Shown here: positions 1,539 to 22,699 of the stretch, in pieces
Numbering within the stretch: the stretch's first letter is position 1
Layout: the number at the start of each line of letters is the position of its first letter
From: Klebsormidium nitens
Taxonomy: Eukaryota > Plantae > Klebsormidiophyceae
DNA: 64,000 bases
Direction of reading: 5' to 3'
NCBI GenBank assembly: GCA_000708835.1
Contig: DF236962.1
Location: 186,001 to 250,000 of the forward strand
Notes under the pieces: model-generated
What the model was told of the DNA's origin: nothing
Database searches by the model: none
The model's input: only the letters and a program-made list of their open reading frames with translations
Translations under genes and position numbers: made by a program

Positions 1539-4500
1539 CTAGCTTGCGCTCTCGACTTTGAATCCCGTCCCCTTGACGAAGTCTTTCAAAACGACAACCA
1601 CATCCTGGAACGCGGGCCGTCCCCGAGGATCCCTGCGCGCGAGATATGTTACGATTCACATTGTAGTAGAATTTGGAAGCTCGAACAAACGAGTAAATCA
1701 TGATTGTCCATCGCTGAGAAGCGAACGTTCACAGCCCAGGCAACGACTGACGATCAGCCGCGTAAAACGGACACTGTCTTTTTCAGGTTACAAATGTGAA
1801 ACCTTTCAGCGAACTGTTCGACCAGTATTTTCCTTAAGCAGGAAGAGGACGAATTGCTGATTTGCGACATACCACTTATGGCCCTCTTAAAAACAACCGA
1901 GCACGTTCACTGCACCACAATTACCGCAAAGCAACGCAACTGGACAACCTGTTACTCAACACCGAGCCTCACCGTTTCCAACAGTTGCGTATGAGCGAAG
2001 CAATGGTGGGATCCACTGTGTCAGGAATGGGCAGCCGTTGATCCTGGAAGCCGACTGCTCCGATGATCTGCCGTAGGAAAGCAGAGCAGATGAGAGAGTG
2101 TAGCACACTTTTAGCGAACGCATCAACCCCGATGATCTGCCGCGAATATGCACAGCAGATCAGATGGTGCGGCATAGTTCTGACCAACGTAGCAGATCCG
2201 GATAGAGATGTCCGTTTCCTGGGCCCAAATTTAACCACCAGGGCTTTTGCTACGCTCGGAAGACCACAAAAAGGAGTAACTGCTGTCAAAATCCAGCAGT
2301 TTCGAGCCAAGACGATAGTTCGAGCGGCTATCGTTTCATCGGTTTTGGGAGATCTGAGTGCTGCTTCGAGAAGCGCAAGATAGACAACTGTCAGCCTTGG
2401 GATTGCTCGAAGACCGCACTGACCAGAATTCACAACAAACGCCCAAAAGCGCAGCAGGAACGAGGGCGTGCTTCGTGTACAGACCTGGCCTGTCTTCATC
2501 CCGCCCCAGGGCCGTTGCATGGTGGTCAGCTCCCACAGGATCACACCGAACGAGTACACGTCGCACTTCTCGTCGGACGGCTCCGAACGCAGCACCTCTG
2601 CGCAGTCACAAAAGAACCCATTGAGCAAAGTTTTGTAGATGACCGCAAGCCCAGAAGAGCTAATGAGTGGAAGAACGGAAGCAACGTGAGCACATGGGCA
2701 GGGTCTCATTGGCACGAACTGTCGATAATGTTCCTGACATGCATAGAGCGTTTTGAAACGTCTTGGGAGGAACTAGGACGTCCCAGATCAACACCACCTT
2801 TACGTCTCCGAAGAGTAGATGCTTGCTTTCAATGCAGGAATGCTAGCGCTGGCCGCGCGAGCCGACCTGGCGCCAACCCTGTCAGCTATGCTTGGCCCCG
2901 CATTTTTCTGCAACTAGTTGGGCGTGCCCAGAAGCTTTTGAGGATGTCCAAAGCATGCCAGAGAGTGTCACACTATAGTCGCAACCAGCTCAAATCTCAG
3001 TAAAGGTGCCAGCCGAGTGGCCTCACCCGGCGCCATCCACTCGGGTGTGCCCGCCCCAGTCATGGAGGAAATGTAGGTCGCGTGCTTGAGGCGCGACATG
3101 CCAAAGTCGCCCACCTTGGCCGTCCAGTCGCGGTCTACCAGAATGTTGGGGCTCTTCAGGTCCCTGCGAGCAGCAAGAAACCTCTGTAGTTCTTTCGGGG
3201 TTGAAAAACTTACGGTCTTGATGTTTCGGGCTTGCGAAGTTCCAAGATTTGGGAGCTTTTTCATGGATCATTCAGACGTTGTGGCTCTTCAGGTCCCCCG
3301 GGAAGCGGAAATCCAACCTATCAGACTGACGTAATGTCATGGTCGCAAGGTTCCGGAGACTTTCAAAATCGAAAGCAGGAGGCGAGGAGTTGACAATCTC
3401 GGCATTATGCTTTCGTTAATGATACGAGCTTTCGAGCATGCGTAAATCCATATTCGGAAGATTTTTAAAATACCAAGCGCGTGAGCTCCGCACCTTGTTA
3501 TTCCAGAGCTTCATACGGATTTCAGGAAACGGAAGGTTTAAACTTTTCAAACGACTGGATCTCCTCAGGCCTTTTTGAGATGAAACTGGAATGAATCCGG
3601 CTTTCATTCTGCAGTTGGGCGAGCGCGCTCACCTGTGCACGATGGGCGGGCTGCACGAGTGCAGGTAGTTCATGCCCTTAGCCACGTCCAGCGCCATGCG
3701 CATCCGACGGCTCTCCGAAACAGGCTCGCGCTTCGTCTGCACAAAAGGAAGAGGAGATGATACCTTAGCGATAACCGTCATTCAAGACCTCCCTGCATTG
3801 TGACTGCGCGTCACCATCCTAACCTAGCCGCCGGAAGTGCTGCACCCTTGGGCCCAAACAATGATCTCAACGATCTTCCTGGCACCTTTCGAAAGTCAGA
3901 CATACTCCTCAAGCCTTTCCCTATGCAGAAAGTCCTGCCAAACACTGGCCTTGCCAGCCGCTCCTGTGACACAAACGCCTGTCTCTGCGCAGCTTTGCAA
4001 AACCCACTTCCAGAGAGGGCCAAACCCGCTGACTCATTGAAACGTAGACCTTCGCAATCGTACATAGGTTGTTGGTCCGCTCTAGTTGCTCTCACCTGGG
4101 GCGTGTTGGTGTGCAGCAGGCGGAAGAGGCTGCCCCGCGGGAGGACCTCCGTGATGATGGCGAAGTTGGGCGGGGTTGTGACCGCCCCCATGAACAGAAC
4201 CACGTTTGGGTGCCGCGCACGCAGCATGATCCCTACCTCCTTCCTGCGGCAAAGGATAACTAAGTCAACATTCGCACTCTTGTTCCGGAACACAGGTGCC
4301 ATGAGGAACTTGAAGCCCGGCATTTTGGTTACAGAAGATCTGAGTGAACCCAGCCCTTAACCAGCCAGCACCGTAGGTTCCTGCTCCAAGTCGGCACGCG
4401 GGTACTTGAAGAACGGGCGAATTGAACACAGAGGCCTGAACTTTGATCCATCTGTAAATTATGCCAGCTTCGCAATAAGATGCCTTGCTCCTCTGTACGA

Positions 4501-7500
4501 GCACAGGCACTTGGCCAAGAATGGGCACTTTGTCGACTTTTCCAATTTTTGCTCAGAGAAGGGATGGGCGAACAAAGGGCATCGCAAGAAACTGCTCAGC
4601 GCTCACCCTCACAGGTAACGAGGAATGCCGCTCAGGCAGAGCAAGTTGGGGCGCATCCATTTGAAAGACGAGGACTAGGAAGTGCGGGAGGTAGAGCTAG
4701 CTTGAACGTCTCTTGTCACTTACCTTTGAGCTCGAACAACTGATGGAGAGAATATGTATACGATCCTGGCATCACAAGCTTTGACGAGCAAGACTCTGAT
4801 AGGGGACGACGTTCAGTAGGGGCCGTAAACGACCTCTTCAAGACCAACCTCCGAATGCAAAATCTTCCTATCTACAATTTGAGTTCACAGATGAGATATA
4901 GCATTCGAAGGGCATCTCAGCAGATTCGGAGGCGGGGTTTCTTACCTGAACTCTTGAATGAGCGCTGGGTTTACGTCCTCTGCCGTGAATACTTTGACAG
5001 CGACGTCACTGCCTTGCCACATGCCATGGTACACAGCTCCAGTTACACCGCGCCCAATCTCTTTCCCCTGCAAACGCGGAAATCTGTGAGCGACAGATCC
5101 TGTGACAGACGCGCAGACCCTGAAGATTACACATCACCAGCCTGAGAACTTACGAAAGAATGAGGAGGCTAATGCTAGACCGGCACGAACTTCCACGGAA
5201 AGATTCCGTGGCAGTGCGCCAAGATGAAACAGAAACACTAGGCACCAGACTTACCAGACATGTCATTTTTGACAGCTGCGGAAGATTCCGAGCCCCTCAG
5301 ATTTGACGGACACCCCCAAACAAAAGTGACCGACACCCCCGGAGAAAAGTGCCTGGAGAGATGTGCTACACTGCCCCAAACGGGCACTGCTTTCACTCCA
5401 CACAAGAACAACCACCCGCAGAGGATTGGCACTAATCATAACACAACAGTGATGCTTACCACCGTGACCTCATCCCAGGGAATGTTCCAGTCCAGCGTCC
5501 CGAGCACCTCGCTGTTCCCCCGGGGGCTGCTAGCCTCCTTGGGCGTTTCCGGTCTACCCGGACTTTCCGCAGCTGGCGACGCTGCCCCGCCCGCTTTAAA
5601 ATGCCCCGCGGGCCGCAAACTGTCCTCTCGCGCCCCCGACATATTGCTCGGGCCGGAGTTTTTCATTCTTCCGGGACTTATCGTGCTCTCCGAAGGGCCG
5701 GGTTCCAAATGCTGCTTCCCCTGCGTGCTGATTTGCTCCGCGTTCAGAAGCGGCTCATCGGTCTTGGCGGCCGCCTGCATGGAACTCAAATCCAGAGGAG
5801 GGGGCTTCGATTGAGCCCCCCGTTTCTTGGGCTGCTGAGCGCTGCTGCTCGACTCGGCTCCGGACCCTTTTGCGGACGCGGCAGCTTTTGCTGACGCTTC
5901 GGACGGTGCTCCGGTGCTGACAGCAACTGGTGGGAGAGCCTCGGTTTGCCTACTCGGTTCATGAACTCCTTGACCGGGTAATTTCTCCCGAGAAGCGCCG
6001 TCCTCTTGTTTATTTCGCACCTCGTCCGGCAACGTGGAGCGATCTAACGACCCACTCACCCCCGCCACTGAGGCAGCAATCGGTTTCCGAACAGCTTCGG
6101 ACTCTGTCTCTTTTCCCATTTCTCTCAAGATGCTATCAGGGCTTCTTTCTAAAGAGGGCCCAGCGGCACTAGCTGACCCGCTCCCTTCTCCCCCCCGGTT
6201 TGCGGATTCGGGGGTATCCTCCGCTACTGCATTAACGGTCGGTTGGACGGACTCCAGGTCCCAACTCCCGAAGCCTTCAGCGAGGGGGGACGAGGCACCC
6301 GGGCTTTGAGTATCCGGGCGACTGACAGACTCGACGTTTGTGAAATCGTCGCCACTAAGCCGATGCATTTCCGAGATGGTCGGAATGGCGGGCGTCCGGT
6401 CACTTGCCACGTGTCGAGCTACCGAACTCGTGACGTCAGCAAGCGGCACAGTGGATGCGGTCGACGCATCAGAGGGTGGGTCCTGCACAAAGCTGGTGAG
6501 GAAGCTTGGCGGCTCGACTGCTTCAGAGGTGCTTGACGGAAGCTTGTCACCTTGAGTAAGGAACCCTGCCAGATTCCCTCTAGAACCGCCGGTGATTCGT
6601 ACCACCTGTTCTTGTCCCGGCCCCCCCGTGCCCGCACCGCCATCACTTCTTTCGGAATCGTCGTTACCTTCTGCTGCGGACTCTGCACCTCTTAACGGTT
6701 CCGCTGGCCCCAATTGCTGCTCTCCTTCCTCTCCCCCCTTCCCTTCACCTCCATCCTTCTTCTTTGAGAGATTCTCCTTCGACTCGCCACCTTTTTCTGC
6801 CGCCCCTCCTTCCTTCCCAGCCGTATCCGACTCCGAGGACTTCTCGGAGCTCGACTTGCGCAGCAACGCTCGCACTTCGTCGTACCCCCCCTCCCCCGGC
6901 ACGTGGTCCAGGATCGCGCTCCCAAACGCGCCCTTGTCATTCTCGCCCGCATCCCGCTCGAGCGCGTCCGCAAAACCGCTGACGTCCCCTGCGTCTTCCT
7001 CGGGCACTGCGTCCACCTCGAGCCGCCACGTGGCATCTTCCTCGTCCAAAGAATGAAACTCGTCCTCCGTCTCACTCCCAAAGGTCGAACTCGCCTGCCG
7101 GCTCAAGTGACCCCCGGGCTTCTTTGCCTGATCCCACTTCATGTACAGCGACGGGTGCCACCCCCCCGGTTCCCCGATGCTCTCGACACTCTCCGTGCGT
7201 GCAATCCTGTGCCCAGACCCGGCCGCGCTGTCCGGTGCCAAGTCCCGGGCAAACTCCCCAGAAAGCCGGGGTGCTTGCGGCCATACGAGGTCGTTCTCAA
7301 AACCTTTAAACGCCGCCAGCCCAGCCTCCCGCTCGATCTCGCTGCTCGTTCTCCGCTGGCCGCCTATTCCCAGCGCCGTCCCAGTCCCCGTGCTCTCTGT
7401 GTCGAGCGACGACTCCTGGCTGGAAAATCCGCTCCCCTGCCGGGAAGGCCGATGCCGGGGCATCCCCTGCGGGGCAACGGAGACGTCGGGCTTCGACCAG

Positions 7501-10399
7501 CTGTCCCCTGAACCCCGTCCCGTCCCCCCCCCCCTAAAGCTCTCCCTAAAACCCTCCCGAAATCCCTCCCGATAGCCCCCTGCAAACCCTTCTCTAGCCG
7601 CCACTTCCCTTCCCGCACCCGCGGCCACGTCCCGCGCCCTGCCCGCAGGATCCTCTCTTACTTCCCCCTCTCTAGTTCCCGCGGCAGACCCCTCCACGAA
7701 CCCCTCCCCGGAGATACGCCGTTCCAGCCCTTGGCGCAAGCTCCCACTGCGCGACACCTGGCGCCCTTCCATCGTCGTTCGCATATGCCGGTACTGCTCT
7801 TTCACGTGGCTAAAATCCACCCTCTCTGCCCAAGCAGATCGCTCGCCCCTGGTCGAAGAAGGGGGCCCCTCGCTCTCAACGCTCGGATCCCGGCGCAGCT
7901 TCGGACCTCTAGGGCTTGGGGGGCCGGCGTTCCCGGTCTTCCTTGAGACCGACTCAATCTCTCTTTTGAAGTCAGGATCGTCTTCGGCTTCGCTCGCTGA
8001 TGCTGCGTTAGGCCGCAGAGCGCCCCACACACCTTTTACAAAACCCCAAATGCCTGTCGCTGCAGGAAACCGTGAAACGCGTTGAGAACACTTCTCCGGC
8101 TAACCTTGGGTCAACAAAGCTCGAATGCTGCAGTAATCTACGTTGCACGCTCTGCAGCAGCAAATGTCGACAAAGATGCAAGAAGGTCATTGGACTCGAG
8201 TTGGAATCAAGCCGTTCCTCGGATCAACTTCGTTATGGTTCGCTTTGGGCGGCATTGTTTTGCAAACCCTCCCCTTTCTGCCCCTGCTCTACTTCTCCAT
8301 CCCCGAACCCTTTGGTCGGAAAAGGCTTGCCAAAACTCCTTTCGCCAAACATTGAATGTCGCTGCTCCAAAACACCCGCCTGTGCTTCCAACGGAAAACA
8401 GATAGACACCCCCTTTTGCATCGATAGACACCCCGTTTCCCTTGGTACCATGACAAAACCCTTCTACTCCTTTGACGAGGTAAACGAAGCCTCTCAGCAC
8501 CCACCTGCTTCCTCTTGGGGTTCCTCCACAATAGGTGCGGCCACAAAATGTTCTCTGGGGCTAGGCAAGGCATGCACCCGGGGAAAGCCACCGGAAGCTC
8601 CCGGAAGAAACGTGGGGGTCGAGCAGAAGCCTGAGATGGCCAGAGCATTCTCGCCTGCAACAAGCGGCATTCATTGGTCAGTTGACCAGATGGATTGGGC
8701 ACTGGCAGTGGGTAAAAGGTGAAGTTAAGCACTCTGCAACTTTCTAAAAGGGGGTTCAAGGGGGTGGATTCGTAGTCAGAACGGCTGCACACTGACGTTG
8801 ATAACTTAGATGCCTTGGAGCGATGAACTGACTTGACAACCAAGGACCGAAACTTGCCATCTTCTGGATGACTCTCCAGAAATGTGCTCAAGAGCAGGGC
8901 CCATCCCAGGTTGCGACTCCTTACGAAAGAAGCACAACGACAATCCCCCATACATCGTCCATCCACAAGCACTAAGAAAGGAAAACATTGACGAAATCTC
9001 CTCAATGCAATAGGATGACCTGCAACAATGCCTGACAGGTAAAGCGCCAATCATGGAAAAAGCGACCTCACCAGCTTTTGGAAGGAAGCGCTTGAGCTCC
9101 ACAATGGTGCAGCACGTGGCGACCATGTCCCCGCGCTCGTCCAATATCGGGGTCGCCGTAATAAGCGTCCACAATACTTCGCCATCGACACGAACGACAG
9201 GAAACTGGCCCGTCCATGCTTCTTTCTACACCAGGAAAGGAAAGTAGGGCGCCTCAGGGAACCAACGGAACCAACTGCTGATATGGGAAGAGCCGTTGAG
9301 TGAAGCTAGAGACAAGGTAAGCAAGCAAGTGGAAGTGAGAATTGTTGTAAAATTATCAAAGCCACGAAGCGCTACTTCCGAGTATGTTGAACAGAGTCTT
9401 CTGCTGCTAAGGTCCCTGTACTTACCCCTAGGCGTCTGACTTACCCTGGCCAACCGTTCTACCACTTTCGCTCCAATGTTTTTAAAGCCGGGTGCCGCCA
9501 TAACTGTGACGGCGTCCTGTCCCAGAATATGCTGACGGGACCATCCAAATAACCTCTCGCAGTACCCGTTGCTGCGCAAGAACAAGGAACTCTTTGAGTT
9601 ATGCGAGCCACTCCCTCACCTTCGCTAGGCGCTCAACCACTTTGTACCCAATGTGTTTATAGCCAGGCGCCGCCATGGTCTTGGTGCCATCAATGCCCAA
9701 GACCTCCTGGCGCTTCCAACCTAACATGCGCTCAAACTCCCTATTGCTGCAAAACCAACAGTTACAGGCCCACATATATATTTCGGGCAAACAAATGCAG
9801 AATCAGGCATGCTCTTAAGGAGCCTGTAATCTCTGCCTGTTTCCCTCAATGCCACCAGCTTGCAAAGAGTCGCCAGCTCTGCCAATGAATATATTATTGA
9901 TCCATATGAGCCCTTTATGCTTTTTCACGGGTACTGTGACACCCGTAAAAGACCAAGCTACCACTGGCTAACTCCAACCAAATGTGAAAAACAGATTCCT
10001 ACAAGTTTACGCAACTTTGACAAGCACTAAGGATGTATGACACTCATAGATCCATTAGCACACCAACGGAGATGTGTGCCGACAGTCTTCAAGCAACCCA
10101 GGCTCAGGATTCAAGCCAAGTACTGCGCTCTGCAAACAAACCTGGGAACTCATGGACAGACACGAATGAGTGCATACAAAGTTCCACTTTCAAAGCCTGA
10201 CTTCAAGCGACGTCCTGACTTCAAGCGACGTCAACAATCTTTGCAAAACTTACACATAGAGGAGGCGCCCCTGCACATCCAGGCAGTAGACCCCCTGCCC
10301 CAAATTCTCCAGAATGTCACCCCCAAATTGGGGGGGCACCCTGAATTGCCCTGAGAAGTCATTAGGCCCAGCAAGCTGGGGCTGCTGGCCGCGCATCTC
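1539..10399 (-). CDS. PAS-domain Raf-like MAPKKK (B2 group, RAF10/RAF11-like), multi-exon, 5' end not resolved
   Basis: Exons read on the minus strand: 10254-10399 ([24 protein letters not shown] start), 9620-9746 or 9445-9571, 9072-9225 ([15 protein letters not shown]...[14 protein letters not shown] end), 8505-8654, 5460-8059 (long disordered region ending [12 protein letters not shown]), 4946-5067 ([27 protein letters not shown]), 4096-4243 ([20 protein letters not shown]), 3633-3736 ([13 protein letters not shown]...IVHR), 3027-3163 ([10 protein letters not shown]...KVGDFGMSR...GTPEWMAP), 2485-2597 ([24 protein letters not shown]), 1973-2067, 1539-1632 (stop). All junctions are GT-AG with consistent phases. 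Confidence 0.93.
9445..9571 (-). other. Alternative PAS exon A (127 nt), candidate mutually exclusive exon
   Basis: ttgcgcag|C AAC GGG TAC...GCC AGG|gtaagt; encodes [42 protein letters not shown]. Confidence 0.85.
9620..9746 (-). other. Alternative PAS exon B (127 nt), candidate mutually exclusive exon
   Basis: ttttgcag|C AAT AGG GAG...GCG AAG|gtgagg; encodes [42 protein letters not shown]. Confidence 0.85.
10197..10232. repeat. Perfect 18-bp tandem duplication in a kinase intron
   Basis: ctgacttcaagcgacgtc x2. Confidence 0.9.
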
Positions 10400-12172
10400 C
10401 TGCAGAGTCATCATCCTTGTAGCTGAGTACCTGAGTTTGGAAGAGTACCGCAGTTTGGAAGGCTGACAGCCAAAGAGGACTTGTCACAGCGCACCGTCAA
10501 TGCTCCTTTAGCAAGGCAGGTGCGTGTGCACGATTGGCTTGGATTTTGCGAAAATCGCCAGCCAGTTCTGAGGGCCCAAGGGTTGCTGCCATCCCCATTG
10601 GCGATACCTTTTGGGGCTACACAGAAGCAATCGGAAATCAGGGGCTGAGAGAGTTCCTTGCCAAGGAGCCACCACATTACAAATTAGTTTCCACAATAGA
10701 GGTAGCGTGGTTTCCACTGATGCTGCACCGGCAACTGGAAATGATTAGCAACATTGTCTGCTTCAATAGCACCATCCACACAGAATGCCACCAGCTTAGA
10801 TATGATTCGCCACAATCAGATGCGAGCATCTCCATCATGTCAAAGTCAGCTGCCAAAGTTATGCAACAATAGTGAAAAACACAGGAACCTATGGGAGCGA
10901 CAAAACAACGAATGCGGGTGTTCTCAGTCTCAATCTTATTCTCATGCGTCCTGGATTCTCTCAAAGGACAACTGATCAGAACTGATCTGCCTGATGAAAT
11001 TCGTGGACGATCAGGACGGCTTGCACTTCACTGATTGGCTGGCGGCAAAAGCGGGGCGCCTTTTGCGGAATCAGAGCATTCAGTAGTGCAACTAACAGTG
11101 ACTGGAATCTGCAGCAACTACCAAATCTCAATCGCAAACAGATGCAATCATCCTCACCTGCCTCAAGACTCCCGCAATCTGACGCATATCACCATCGCAG
11201 GTTCTGCCGCCTCATATGCTGATGTCAAACAGATTCAAGTGAGCGAAGCTTTCAGAATTACTTATGGAATCCTCTAGCTACAAATGCTATGGTGGTCAAC
11301 TTGTTTGCAGAGCACTTCCCGTACGAGATGGCCACCAATTTGTAATAGCTCAGTACCAAGGCCAATGGTGAGAAGTGCTGGCGGTAGCTTTACAATATAG
11401 CTCAGCTACAAAGATTGGCAAACCTTTTGCAGTAGATGCTCAAATATGGAAGAATCCTATATATCAGCAAAAGTGGGATGCGCGTCAGCGCGCAACCAGG
11501 TTAACCGAGCTCAGCTGTTTTCAAATCTTTGATCCACCTTCTCCACAAATGAACATAAGATACGCCGGCTAAGCGTATGTGGGACCAACGCAAGCAGAAT
11601 GCTATATGTGTCTTTATGCTATCTTGACGTGCCAACTTCCAAAGACAGCTGCACAGCGCCCCTCTCCTGCCCTGCATGAGAGAGATGTTTTCCTGCTGCC
11701 ATTTGCGCCTTCCTTCCGCCAGCAGGTTCAGTCTTCCACTTCGCCATAATAGTTCAAGTTGCAAATATCAACTTGAAATCTGTCAATCAGCAGATCTGCA
11801 TGAATCGAAACGAATCGGATACGCTTTGCAGAAGATCCGCCTAGGCAGGCGCAGGCTGGCACTGTAATGGCAACGGTGACCAGGCTCCCTAGGCCGCGGT
11901 GTGCAGTGTGCGTGTGCACCTGTTCAGTGAAGAAGCACTTTTGACGCAGACAGCTTGCAGTACCGCCACTTGGCGCTATATGACAAATGTTGCCTACACG
12001 TGGCACAAAAACAGCCCAGCCTCGACTCGAGTGCTACTTCCTTTGCCGTCGATTGAATGTACGGTGTTCTCATCGCACGACTGGAAGCTTCTCATACATA
12101 CTGGCAACTCTTGCTTCCACTAAGGGGTGCTTTCACAAAGATACAGGAGCCCCGGGCACCTCAACTAGGTAA

Positions 12173-20824: not shown

Positions 20825-22114
20825 CTAGTAGTCGAGTTCCAGAACCATGACCTTATTGAAAGAACTTTCATCAGTGCAGTGAACAGTTCCTCGCAAGTTC
20901 GACCTCGAAGCTGGAAGGGAGCTACATTGAGCACCTACCTCTGCTCCATTCTTCTCCATTCGTTCCACCATCAGATACATCAGCTCTTCCCCAACGCTCT
21001 CCCCGCTTCCGGCTTCAGCCCCTTCCTCGGTCTCAGCAACAGCCGCCAAACCCCCCTCCCTACCCTCCTCCTCTTCCCCTTCCCCCAGTCCCCACCTTTC
21101 CAGCGCCCTCATCAAAACCTCCGCGGTTGCTGGCCGGTTCTGCAAACCCATCGACGTTCCAGGGCGACTATTCACACCATCTGCTGACAGGGATGTCCCT
21201 GGGCGAGAATTGAAGCCGAGGCTCGTCCCTGGTCGACTGCCTGAAGCTGCCATTCTCATCGCGGCAAGTTGCTCTGGGGAGACGGCCGTTTTCGGCCGGT
21301 CAGGGATGCCGTGCTGGCTGAAATGCGTCAGGCTCGGAACCGTCCTCTGGGGAGGTTCTGGGATATCTTCGACTGGACGCGTGATCAGCTCCCGTCTCGT
21401 GAAAGTTTCCGGCATGATTGGTTTTAGAAGCGGTGTCTTTGCGGGGGGCGAGTTCTGGGGCCAAGTAGGGAGGGGTTCCAGCCGGTAAAACATCGTCGGC
21501 CGGCTTATGAGCGGGGTAGGGGGGCAGTACCGGGGCTCTCTGGCGGGGGGTGAATCGGGCATTGTCGCCCCTCCCCCTTCGCCTCGACTTTCCATCTTAG
21601 CAGGGCTGGTTGCACACCGTGCCGCCTCAACGGGGGGCTGGCTACCAGACGGTTCGAATCGCACGCGGTCACCCCCCGCCGTCCTCAAGCCACTTCTCAG
21701 CTTCTCCTCCTTCCCCCCTTTTTGACAACCACCGGCCCCCGCGCGCTGCTTTACCGGGCTGGCATGCTTTACCCCGCCCGCCTTCTTCAGCGCTTGCAGA
21801 AACGATGCCTCTGGTTTGTTTGGACTCCGCTCCTTCGCGAACTTAGTTCCCAAGCTGCTCCAGCAGAGCATGTCTAGTTTACCCACCGATTGCTCTGCCC
21901 CGGGGGACCGCAAATCGTCCCCCCCAGATTGCCTGCTGCGCCGCCCCCCCCGGAAGCAGAGCGCCCCCTCCGACTTCTCCCGCCTCAGCGCGGGGCTCTC
22001 GGTCTCCTCCGCCCATTTCGAAGCTGGCTCTCTCAGCCGGAGCACGTTTGCTCCGTGGATGTTTAGCCTACCAAGAGCTTTGGAGGTCTTTTTGGGGGAA
22101 GCCTTCGACGCCAT
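20825..22114 (-). CDS. Hypothetical low-complexity protein with repeated RPxT/S motifs; probably spliced onward at its 3' end
   Basis: 429-aa open frame with GC-rich coding-like composition; a possible donor (GAG|gtaggt near 20936) and acceptor (near 20178) suggest more exons; no recognisable domain. Confidence 0.55.
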   Translation of the reverse strand: MASKASPKKTSKALGRLNIHGANVLRLREPASKWAEETESPALRREKSEGALCFRGGRRSRQSGGDDLRSPGAEQSVGKLDMLCWSSLGTKFAKERSPNKPEASFLQALKKAGGVKHASPVKQRAGAGGCQKGGKEEKLRSGLRTAGGDRVRFEPSGSQPPVEAARCATSPAKMESRGEGGGATMPDSPPAREPRYCPPTPLISRPTMFYRLEPLPTWPQNSPPAKTPLLKPIMPETFTRRELITRPVEDIPEPPQRTVPSLTHFSQHGIPDRPKTAVSPEQLAAMRMAASGSRPGTSLGFNSRPGTSLSADGVNSRPGTSMGLQNRPATAEVLMRALERWGLGEGEEEEGREGGLAAVAETEEGAEAGSGESVGEELMYLMVERMEKNGAEVGAQCSSLPASRSNLRGTVHCTDESSFNKVMVLELDY

Positions 22115-22699
22115 CTCAGCAGCGAAAGGGTGCGCTCATCGATGTTTTACCGCTTTGTTACAGGGGTTGCACCCTCTTATATTCGCATGTGAGGGTTTCG
22201 AAGCAAAAGTGTTTGCTGCTCAGTTCCCTACTTCAAACGTCCCTTTTGTTCGTCAAAGGCGCTCTGCATGTAATCCTGAATGCAACCGCTTCACATAATC
22301 TGGATTGAAGCAATACAGCAAACCTCGGCGTACGATCTGCAGCATTGCCTCAAGGCTTCATTGTCCTTCAACTTTGTGTTCATAAAGCATTCTTTTATGG
22401 ATCCTTTCAACAAGGTGCCGGACTCTATTCCGTGCTGTTCTGTTCAACGTCATCTTCTTGAAGCTTTATGTCCCCGAGGAGGAGAATCTCTTACTTGACT
22501 ACACGGGCTCGTTGCGTCTATGCTTTGGTAAGGATCATTTGCTTCTTCCTTCTGATTCATCGAGAGACACTAGTTTCTGATTTGATACTTCATACACAGC
22601 GCGACTGCACGTGTGACAGGCGTATTTGAAGGTCGGTAAAGGGGAGGCTTTGTTGACCTGGACTTACCTATATGAAGGGTGATAGAAGCTTTGAAGATA

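Follow-up and report, generated by a model that had tools for sequence, protein, structure and literature searches.

In osmostress signalling, SnRK2 is activated by kinases of the B2/B3 Raf-like type. The B2 Rafs of land plants, including RAF10 and RAF11 of Arabidopsis and MpB2Raf1/2 of Marchantia, consist of an N-terminal PAS domain and a C-terminal Raf-like kinase domain and have no EDR1 domain (PMC9370073). In both the B2 and the ARK-type Rafs of land plants, dimerisation is the sole role attributed to the PAS domain, which seems not to be needed for the ABA response (PMC9370073). The moss ARK/ANR proteins are composed of PAS, EDR1 and kinase domains, and the structure of their PAS homodimer has been determined (5IU1).

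Exons 2 and 3 of mammalian alpha-tropomyosin are mutually exclusive and are separated by an intron that is too short. A different arrangement, docking/selector RNA pairing, is seen in insect Dscam and human ATE1. In C. elegans, exons 5A/5B of egl-15, exons 9/10 of let-2 and pairs in bet-2, gly-5 and gly-6 are exclusive with a too-short intervening intron (PMC4165533). Most exclusive clusters of this nematode whose exon lengths are not a multiple of three depend on NMD (PMC4165533). Internal homologous exclusive exons have rarely been reported in Arabidopsis, and a survey of such exons found none described in the sources it searched (PMC3923563).

The gene described here lies in a 64-kb window of the Klebsormidium nitens genome, which is the whole stretch of DNA that was analysed. 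Two neighbouring exons in its PAS-coding part, designated A and B, are very likely true mutually exclusive homologous exons that stem from an old tandem exon duplication in a B2/B3 Raf-like MAP3K, and the gene would then encode two kinases differing in the PAS core. A sequence-only reading of the window had made this claim, and RNA joints, conservation and a structure model now support it.

Gene organisation and the twin exons

The features of the locus are collected in Table 1. Pfam places the PAS domain at residues 39-144 and the kinase domain at residues 1068-1322 of the public K. nitens protein P0001, and the largest exon encodes an 870-residue low-complexity linker. P0001 represents the B form only: its residues 60-101 match exon B, and exon A is absent. 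Since the public annotation holds the B form alone, comparative studies miss isoform A.

Table 1. Features of the PAS-kinase gene, in coordinates of the window
Feature	Position	Strand	Description	Evidence
PAS-kinase gene	1542-11190	-	mapped extent	tblastn of P0001 on the window, RNA joints, Pfam
Upstream constitutive exon	10254-10433	-	N-terminal part of PAS, strands A and B	RNA contigs, 4/4 runs
Intron 5' of exon A	9747-10253	-	507 nt	RNA contigs
13-nt element in upstream intron	9927-9939	-	12/13 complementary to first bases of exon B (9557-9569)	significance unproven
Exon A, alternative copy	9746-9620	-	127 nt; AG before, GTGAGG after	
Inter-twin intron	9619-9572	-	48 nt; GTGAGG...GCGCAG	zero RNA contig depth
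CATAAC, branch-point-like	9603-9598	-	intron positions 17-22; TAAC from position 19	sequence motif
Exon B, default copy	9571-9445	-	127 nt; AG before, GTAAGT after	
Intron 3' of exon B	9226-9444	-	219 nt; GT..AG ends	RNA joint 9445/9225
Downstream constitutive exon	9071-9225	-	PAS strands G, H and I	joints at 9225 and 9071/8653
Further downstream exon	8653-8505	-		
Large low-complexity exon	8059 to ~5460	-		
Seven kinase-domain exons	to ~1542	-		

The upstream constitutive exon ends with the residues GRLLY and the GT of a split Val codon, and its donor at 10254 reads GTAAGT. Its 5' border is at 10433 or 10430, because CAG is repeated on either side of the joint. The loose end of the RNA contigs of this exon resumes at 11161-11190.

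Exons A and B each begin with the last base of a split codon (phase 2) and are left in phase 0, and neither contains a stop. They are identical at 25 of 42 full codons (26 of 43 when the split Val that they share is counted) and at 78 of 127 bases. A tblastn search of the whole window with one twin recovers the other at E ~1e-14, which places their similarity far above chance, and finds no third copy. Synonymous sites between A and B are saturated (pS 0.78), and pN is 0.28. The twins thus form a homologous exon pair by adjacency, equal length, phase, splice-site type and homology. The size, AG/GT borders, phases, 25/42 identity, open frames and 48-nt spacing had all been noted in the sequence-only reading and are confirmed. 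In length, phase, splice-site type and homology, and in the replacement of a compact domain unit, the pair resembles the homologous exclusive exons of animals (Kassiopeia, PMC3923563). It differs from these cases in lying in the plant lineage, and both RNA joints and its conservation among related algae stand behind it.

Splice joints in RNA

RNA was available as assembled contigs of four runs (X1-X4) from four studies; the assembly drops rare variants, and all contigs match the window at an identity of at least 99%. Joints that include B only, 10254/9571 and 9445/9225, are present in 4/4 runs with depths of 33-91 and GT..AG ends. The joint from A to the downstream exon, 9620/9225, which skips B, is also found in 4/4 runs, and the joint from the upstream exon to A, 10254/9746, in 1/4 (X4, depth 56). 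These are the four junctions that had been predicted from the genomic sequence. The flanking exon ends, 9197-9225 and 10254-10283, are common to all alternative contigs. Both twins therefore occur in spliced RNA, each joined to constitutive flanks, and at the level of contigs, from which rare forms may be dropped, a transcript contains exactly one twin joined to both flanks.

The joint between the twins, 9620/9571, is absent from the contigs of the four runs even at depths of 70-90, and the double-skip joint 10254/9225 was not reported among them. Contig depth over 9572-9619 is likewise zero in all four runs. Low levels of twin joining or of retention of the 48-nt intron are compatible with these contigs, which drop rare forms, but routine splicing or retention of that intron, either of which would have spoken against exclusive use, is seen in no contig.

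The depth ratio of A to B is 6.6:91, 8:33, 6:84 and, in X4, 88:73. As a share, this is about 7:93 in the first and third of these runs, 19:81 in the second and about 50:50 in X4. In X1-X3, a single contig joins 9225 to 9620 and then continues unbroken from 9620 to 10283 or 10185, retaining the 507-nt intron; the clean 10254/9746 joint is missing from the contigs of these three runs. In X4, the retained upstream intron is found in a separate contig at a depth of 15, compared with 56 for the clean A joint and 73 for B. Productive A mRNA is shown in X4 only.

The reading frame discriminates among these products. Because 127 is 3n+1, wrong combinations of the twins shift the frame. Translation confirms the earlier claim that inclusion of both A and B leads to a stop, which lies within exon B. 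Skipping of both twins results in a frameshift and a stop 109 codons on, and retention of the 507-nt intron in a stop one codon past the exon border. The frame is open through the 870-codon exon in the A-only and B-only products alone, and all others meet an early stop.

The intron between the twins

A motif scan places the candidate branch adenosine of CATAAC 21 nt from the exon A donor and 27 nt from the exon B acceptor, in agreement with the distance of about 20 nt from the donor given in the sequence-only reading. The statement that the other introns are much longer also holds: the other 12 introns of the gene measure about 219-727 nt, some as defined by RNA joints and some by protein mapping, and each of them exceeds the inter-twin intron in length by a factor of four to fifteen. 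The literature searched yielded no intron-length statistics for K. nitens. We infer a steric block by the 48-nt intron, with which the data agree; disposal of the frame-shifted products by NMD would look the same.

The arrangement is like that of the C. elegans steric pairs and of alpha-tropomyosin, in which the intervening intron is far shorter than the others, is never seen excised and crowds the donor and the branch region together. All five steric clusters of C. elegans have exon lengths of 3n, whereas the algal twins are 3n+1, which would add a frame-shift/NMD backstop.

The swapped segment of the PAS domain

The AlphaFold model of the PAS domain, made for the B form, has a pLDDT of 81.7. 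The swapped segment corresponds to model residues 39-80 and comprises exactly the four helices (residues 40-46, 50-53, 58-62 and 65-79) between strand B and strand G, which make up the entire helical half of the fold. The model thus bears out the assignment of the segment, proposed from sequence, to the helical part of the PAS fold. In other PAS domains, these helices bound one side of the pocket for cofactor or ligand and contribute to the surface. Since the same helices line the cavity and surface there, the two isoforms would be expected to differ in what the PAS domain binds or pairs with.

The best fold matches include the PAS domain of PpANR and flavin-binding PAS/LOV domains. The hallmark of LOV domains is a GRNCRFLQ-type motif in helix E-alpha, with a photoactive Cys and flavin-binding Arg and Gln. 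At the aligned positions, B has GQDAVTVM and A has GIDGTKTM, and the motif is absent; a LOV-type photoreceptor or flavin-binding PAS is rejected. What the fold has in common with LOV and NifL is no more than the general PAS fold.

Comparison with land-plant Raf-like kinases

The kinase domain matches Pfam PK_Tyr_Ser-Thr with an E value of 5e-61 and shares 60-65% identity with B3 (SIS8/EDR1-domain) Rafs and 45-55% with B2-like matches. In a kinase tree, the algal protein falls in a clade with the B2-like and the B3 sequences (support 100/99), and these three lineages part in a three-way split. The protein is a member of the B2/B3 group of Raf-like MAP3Ks. No match to the EDR1 domain (PF14381) is found in P0001 at E values up to 0.01. 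The sequence-only reading had called the gene a B2 Raf; the architecture, with PAS and kinase domains and no EDR1 domain, agrees with that label, while the kinase tree leaves the choice between B2 and B3 open. Assignment to the ARK/ANR type of B3 Rafs was rejected, as P0001 does not contain PF14381, which is present in Sphagnum ARK-like proteins.

A B2-type PAS is nearest to the algal PAS, with 34% identity, an E value of 1e-22 and a common WTGQFPV motif. Among solved structures, moss ANR matches best by sequence (E 7e-11) and is one of the best matches in fold. A Sphagnum ARK-like gene has an intron at the same place as the algal gene, just before the helical segment. Unlike the algal gene, it lacks an intron on the far side of the segment, which it contains only once. 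In the B2 Raf genes of land plants, an exclusive exon pair like that of the alga has not been reported.

Conservation in related algae

Collinear orthologous loci were found on two algal metagenome contigs (L002 and L003) by look-up of large-exon matches. Both have the twins as well, each 127 nt long and bordered by AG/GT, with an intron of 62 nt in between, and their downstream PAS exon is 86% identical to that of K. nitens. Between L002 and L003, the twins are 96-97% identical, compared with 76% for the flanking introns and 89% for the short intron. The flanking introns gain and lose bases, while the length of the short intron stays exactly equal. Within the short intron of both, a yTnAy motif is separated from the donor by 38 nt and from the acceptor by 24 nt. 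Both twins are open in the two relatives and more conserved than the adjacent constitutive exons, which speaks against neutral decay of one copy, the outcome that would have told against the original claim.

The six exon copies of K. nitens, L002 and L003 form one clade with a support of 91/95. A separate duplication in the L002/L003 lineage was rejected (AU p = 0.037). The tree of the 42-residue segments gives no one-to-one pairing of A and B with the copies of the relatives. Exon A has a dN/dS of about 0.1-0.2 against these copies, and across copy comparisons pN is 0.26-0.28 and pS is 0.67-0.78 or more. With open frames and a length of 127 nt in three genomes, both copies have been kept as coding by selection.

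The large exon of a closer relative is present on a further contig (L001) with 68% identity; the contig begins 493 nt upstream of that exon and does not cover the PAS exons. A word-index protein search with the PAS region returned bacterial multi-PAS proteins only, with no algal or plant orthologue. The best 150 matches of an exhaustive search of representatives were also mostly bacterial multi-PAS proteins, with one useful match, P0106. This sequence is a transcript fragment of another alga (L008), a single cluster member without genomic DNA. A metagenome scan with the downstream PAS exon gave four weak matches of 14-30 residues at 43-79% identity, presumably unrelated PAS domains.

Discussion

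Each mature mRNA of this gene would contain either A or B and would specify one of two kinases that are identical except at 17 of the 42 residues spanning helices C-alpha to F-alpha. B would be the default form, and A may make up as much as about half of the transcripts. Exclusive use most likely rests on two layers of control. In the first, the 48-nt intron would hold both the exon A donor and the branch site and acceptor of exon B, and would probably be too short for a spliceosome to assemble on; a committed A donor would block the B acceptor, and vice versa. In the second, double inclusion, double skipping or intron retention gives an early stop, because 127 is not a multiple of three, and the product would be removed by NMD.

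The pair could be exclusive with no steric role of the intron, the choice being made by competition of splice sites or by regulators, and A+B and skipped products being cleared by NMD. An intron of 62 nt, as in the relatives, is of a size that many eukaryotes can splice, and the early stop met by every wrong combination of 3n+1 exons fits this explanation, as does the NMD dependence of most non-3n exclusive clusters in C. elegans (PMC4165533). It accounts less well for an intron so far below the others of the gene, with a length fixed in the relatives while the flanking introns vary, and for the absence of A+B contigs at considerable depth; we regard it as somewhat unlikely. Selection of the exon by competing RNA base-pairing of the docking/selector type is considerably more doubtful. 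The 13-nt element of the upstream intron could pair with the start of exon B, and a second, weaker complementary element is found at position 126 of that intron. About 0.3 such 13-mer pairs are expected by chance in the stretch (an estimate), however, and stems exceed shuffled sequences only weakly and inconsistently: the K. nitens upstream intron has 12 stems of at least 12 nt against 2-8 in five shuffles, and the other five comparisons are within or below the shuffled range. A stem scan found no equivalent of the element in common with L002 or L003, and we judge this explanation very improbable.

A further possibility is that exon A is a regulatory decoy, such that stop-containing, intron-retaining RNA is its main product and the choice between A and B sets the dose of a single B protein. 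The exon A contig of X1-X3, which runs through the retained intron into a stop and is not accompanied by the clean joint, is what a decoy predicts. In X4, however, the clean joint clearly outweighs the retained intron and approaches B in depth. Exon A moreover retains an open frame of 42 codons in which, compared with three other copies, pN is far lower than pS, and the twins of the relatives surpass their neighbouring constitutive exons in conservation; a decoy would need no conserved protein sequence. A decoy role is thus improbable, if less so than control by base-pairing. An assembly artefact, or a pair of alleles or paralogues, is hardly credible as the source of the pattern in place of alternative splicing of one gene. 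The data are indeed short-word contigs and not single molecules, but the twins stand in tandem within one genomic sequence that has no third copy in the window, and the contigs agree closely with the window, share their flanking ends and repeat the pattern in four studies.

Given mutually exclusive use of A and B, we tentatively suggest, with somewhat less than even confidence, that the choice is a regulated switch. A would change from about 7% of transcripts, mostly intron-retaining, to about half, clean in one study, and the switch would re-tune the ligand or partner specificity of the PAS domain in an ancestral B2/B3 Raf; the pair would be older than the split among Klebsormidium-like algae. 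Two helical halves have been kept for a long time and the A:B ratio shifts strongly between data sets; we therefore argue that the PAS domain does something specific. Isoforms A and B provide two natural variants for probing its role. Homologous internal exclusive exons characterise animal genes, with hardly any record from the plant lineage (PMC3923563). The present case is documented by RNA joints and by related algae that conserve the pair, and its structural meaning is clear. If the proposal is true, the pair would constitute an RNA-level sensor switch in a stress pathway that plants carried onto land.

Twin exons in the sequence

The minus-strand gene for a PAS-domain kinase contains two adjacent exons of equal length, designated A and B, the latter being the default copy. 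Their coordinates, with those of the orthologous exons on L002 and L003, two metagenome contigs of related algae, are listed below.

Coordinates of the twin exons and their neighbours in K. nitens (window positions) and on two contigs of related algae (contig positions)
Feature	Position	Strand	Description
Upstream exon	3' end 10254	minus	donor GTAAGT
Exon A	9746-9620	minus	127 nt, AG before, GT after
Intron between A and B	9619-9572	minus	48 nt
Exon B	9571-9445	minus	127 nt, AG before, GT after
Next exon	starts 9225	minus	
L002 twin exons	6116-6242 and 6305-6431		each 127 nt, open, AG/GT borders
L003 twin exons	2959-3085 and 3148-3274		each 127 nt, open, AG/GT borders

Both exons complete the same split Val codon and leave in phase 0. 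At the nucleotide level the two agree at 78 of 127 bases, and 25 of the 42 full codons encode identical residues. When the whole window is searched in six frames, A and B retrieve each other at an E value of about 1e-14, and no third copy is found. Six splicing outcomes were translated. The frame stays open through the following 870-codon exon in the A-only and B-only forms alone; early stops are met when both exons are included, when both are skipped, when the 48-nt intron is retained, and when the upstream intron is retained. The sequence-only reading, which had proposed a mutually exclusive pair swapping the PAS core of a B2 Raf kinase, described the exons, their lengths, phases, borders, spacing, identity and frame effects correctly in every checkable detail.

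Two copies of a perfect 18-nt direct tandem repeat also lie in the upstream intron (window 10196-10231), at a distance of 23-58 nt from its donor, and a related 11-nt motif is found at 10087-10097.

Transcripts containing exon A or exon B

Twenty public runs contain 0.4-0.7 of the sampled words from a 5-kb stretch of the gene. Assembled contigs of four runs (X1-X4), each from a different study, were aligned to 8400-10800 with a reporting threshold of 1%. All aligned contigs match at least 99% and skip introns with GT..AG ends, and thus represent RNA. The B-only form is present in all four runs as a single contig with joints 9225/9445 and 9571/10254 flanking exon B, at a depth of 33-91. All four runs also show exon A spliced past B to the downstream exon (9225/9620). 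In X4, exon A has a depth of 88 and two continuations diverge at 9746: one is joined cleanly to 10254 (depth 56), the other retains the intron (depth 15); clean, fully spliced A is seen in this run only. In X1-X3, the A contig has a depth of 6-8 and reaches the upstream exon unbroken, reading through A and all 507 nt of the upstream intron. By contig depth, a rough measure, A accounts for about 7% in two runs, 19% in another and about half in the remaining one.

No contig in the four runs covers 9572-9619, and neither joint 9620/9571 nor joint 10254/9225 is reported at the 1% threshold, in assemblies that drop rare variants. Both single-inclusion forms therefore exist, while double inclusion and double skipping are unseen in these contigs. 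Thus, as the sequence-only reading anticipated, both exons enter transcripts, and the 48-nt intron is neither spliced nor retained at the level that contigs report. Together, RNA and conservation make it highly probable that A and B are spliced in an either-or manner.

The A contigs of X1-X3 have already lost the downstream intron and exon B, yet keep the 507-nt upstream intron (window 9747-10253, minus strand), which is mostly removed in X4. This suggests that removal of the 507-nt intron is the regulated or slow step toward the A form.

Conservation and origin of the pair

L002 and L003 were found as large-exon matches in JGI metagenome contigs. At both loci, collinearity with the K. nitens gene extends from the PAS exons through the last kinase exons. 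The downstream PAS exon is 86% identical to that of K. nitens, most kinase exons are 88-98% identical, with lower values toward the 3' end, and the low-complexity exon is 35-38% identical. The same tandem pair lies at the same place in both, separated by an intron of 62 nt. Between L002 and L003, nucleotide identity is 96-97% in the two twin exons, 90% and 94% in the neighbouring constitutive exons, 76% in the flanking introns, whose lengths have changed, and 89% in the short intron, whose length is equal in both. With both copies open and far better conserved than the flanking introns, neither is decaying neutrally.

Within K. nitens, A and B differ with a pS of 0.78, at which synonymous sites are saturated, and a pN of 0.28; A compared with the relatives' copies gives a dN/dS of about 0.1-0.2. 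Phylogenetic analysis of the 42-residue segment groups all six copies in one clade (91/95), apart from another alga's transcript, angiosperm B2-type PAS domains and Sphagnum ARK PAS domains. A tree forcing the two L copies together is rejected (AU p = 0.037), so the duplication is older than the split of the K. nitens and L lineages; the tree does not pair A and B with particular copies of the relatives. A Sphagnum ARK-like gene shares the intron position just before the segment, but lacks the intron after it and the second segment copy that the algal gene possesses.

The twins of each relative start with 12 identical bases, CAATAGATACTG (L002 6116-6127 and 6305-6316; L003 2959-2970 and 3148-3159). 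The downstream intron of both also has, at about 135-140 nt, a conserved element complementary to this acceptor region. These features may be remnants of gene conversion or may serve a regulatory pairing. L002 also contains a retrotransposon gag/pol-like gene (21464-22678; Pfam Retrotran_gag_2, Pol_BBD), which lies about 2 kb downstream of its orthologous kinase gene.

How exclusivity may be enforced

The intron between the twins is short: the other 12 introns of the gene (219-727 nt) exceed it four- to fifteenfold. It contains a branch-like TAAC whose A lies 21 nt from the donor of A and 27 nt from the acceptor of B, the geometry of the classical steric model. The short intron of L002 and L003 has a yTnAy motif, with 38 nt separating it from the donor and 24 nt from the acceptor. 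Exons 2 and 3 of alpha-tropomyosin are a known case of this model. In C. elegans, five clusters whose introns are shorter than 40 nt also follow it (PMC4165533). Machinery at the donor of A and machinery at the branch site of B could not coexist; this would leave the donor of A to be used with the far acceptor, or the acceptor of B with the far donor. Exon length would add a second layer: at 3n+1, wrong combinations are frame-shifted and would be left to NMD as a backstop, a layer also present in most C. elegans clusters with exons of non-3n length (PMC4165533). The contig data are compatible with both layers alike, as contigs cannot show rare NMD substrates.

Selection of the exon by RNA pairing of the docking/selector type has little support. 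A single 13-nt stretch of the upstream intron is complementary to the start of exon B, roughly as expected by chance; stems are at most weakly commoner than in shuffles, and no pairing element is common to K. nitens and L002/L003. The steric mechanism is the best-fitting candidate explanation, with about even odds.

The kinase and its PAS domain

The public K. nitens protein for this gene, P0001 ('Protein kinase superfamily protein', 1339 residues), is 100% identical to the large exon and includes exon B but not exon A. Pfam identifies a PAS domain (39-144) and a protein kinase domain (1068-1322), and no EDR1 domain. The kinase domain is 60-65% identical to those of land-plant B3 Rafs (SIS8-like, EDR1-domain proteins and Sphagnum PAS-EDR1-kinase proteins) and 45-55% identical to those of B2-type PAS-kinase proteins. 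In the kinase tree, the algal protein joins the B2 and B3 groups in a clade (support 100/99) whose internal three-way split lacks resolution. The PAS domain is closer to a B2-type PAS (34% identity, E 1e-22, with a common WTGQFPV motif) than to the Sphagnum ARK-type PAS (31%, E 1e-14). Its best solved relative by sequence is 5IU1 (E 7e-11), a PAS homodimer of the moss ANR/ARK kinase. By sequence comparison, the gene is assigned to the B2/B3 group of Raf-like MAP3Ks, with a B2-like architecture. The proposed B2 label agrees with the architecture and the PAS affinity; given the three-way split of the kinase tree, it is plausible but not proven.

One exon (window 5460-8059, minus strand; about 870 codons) encodes a low-complexity Ser/Gly/Glu/Ala-rich linker from PAS to kinase, occupying the position that the EDR1 domain has in ARK-type Rafs. 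Its conservation is 68% in L001, a closer relative's contig, against the lower values in L002 and L003. At the 5' end, contigs of all four runs join 11161/10433 (equally 11158/10430; minus strand), so that the annotated start codon at 11187 is out of frame with the PAS domain. The P0001 model requires an acceptor about 28 nt further down, which is absent from the contigs of the four runs. Translation probably starts at the ATG at 10414 (MMTLQEM...), preceded by a short upstream reading frame that overlaps it.

The B-form PAS domain, as modelled with AlphaFold (mean pLDDT 81.7), contains strands at 25-29, 34-38, 84-91, 97-108 and 114-123, and helices at 40-46, 50-53, 58-62 and 65-79. The alternative segment corresponds to model residues 39-80, that is, all four helices from Cα to Fα and nothing more. 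Fold comparison, at E values of about 1e-9 to 1e-8, finds matches to many LOV domains, the PpANR PAS and the NifL FAD-binding PAS. Opposite the LOV motif GRNCRFLQ stand GQDAVTVM in B and GIDGTKTM in A, which rules out a LOV photoreceptor. The 17 differences between A and B are located in Cα, Dα/Eα and the start of Fα; the second half of Fα is nearly constant, with a sole change at the last residue (K in A, R in B). The differences do hit positions that line the cofactor cavity in NifL/LOV-like PAS domains, and by analogy the two PAS forms likely differ in ligand or partner. The PAS domains of land-plant B2 and ARK-type Rafs have so far been tied to dimerisation alone (PMC9370073).

Significance

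Homologous exons used in a mutually exclusive way have been described before, as have short introns between them and a backstop by NMD. Plant-lineage reports of such exons are rare and mostly predictions (PMC3923563), and our literature search found no account of exclusive exons in either PAS-Raf kinases or Klebsormidium. The novelty lies in the location: a streptophyte alga, and there the sensor domain of a Raf-like kinase whose group acts upstream of SnRK2. The share of exon A changes greatly between data sets, and in three of the four runs its use is tied to retention of the upstream intron.
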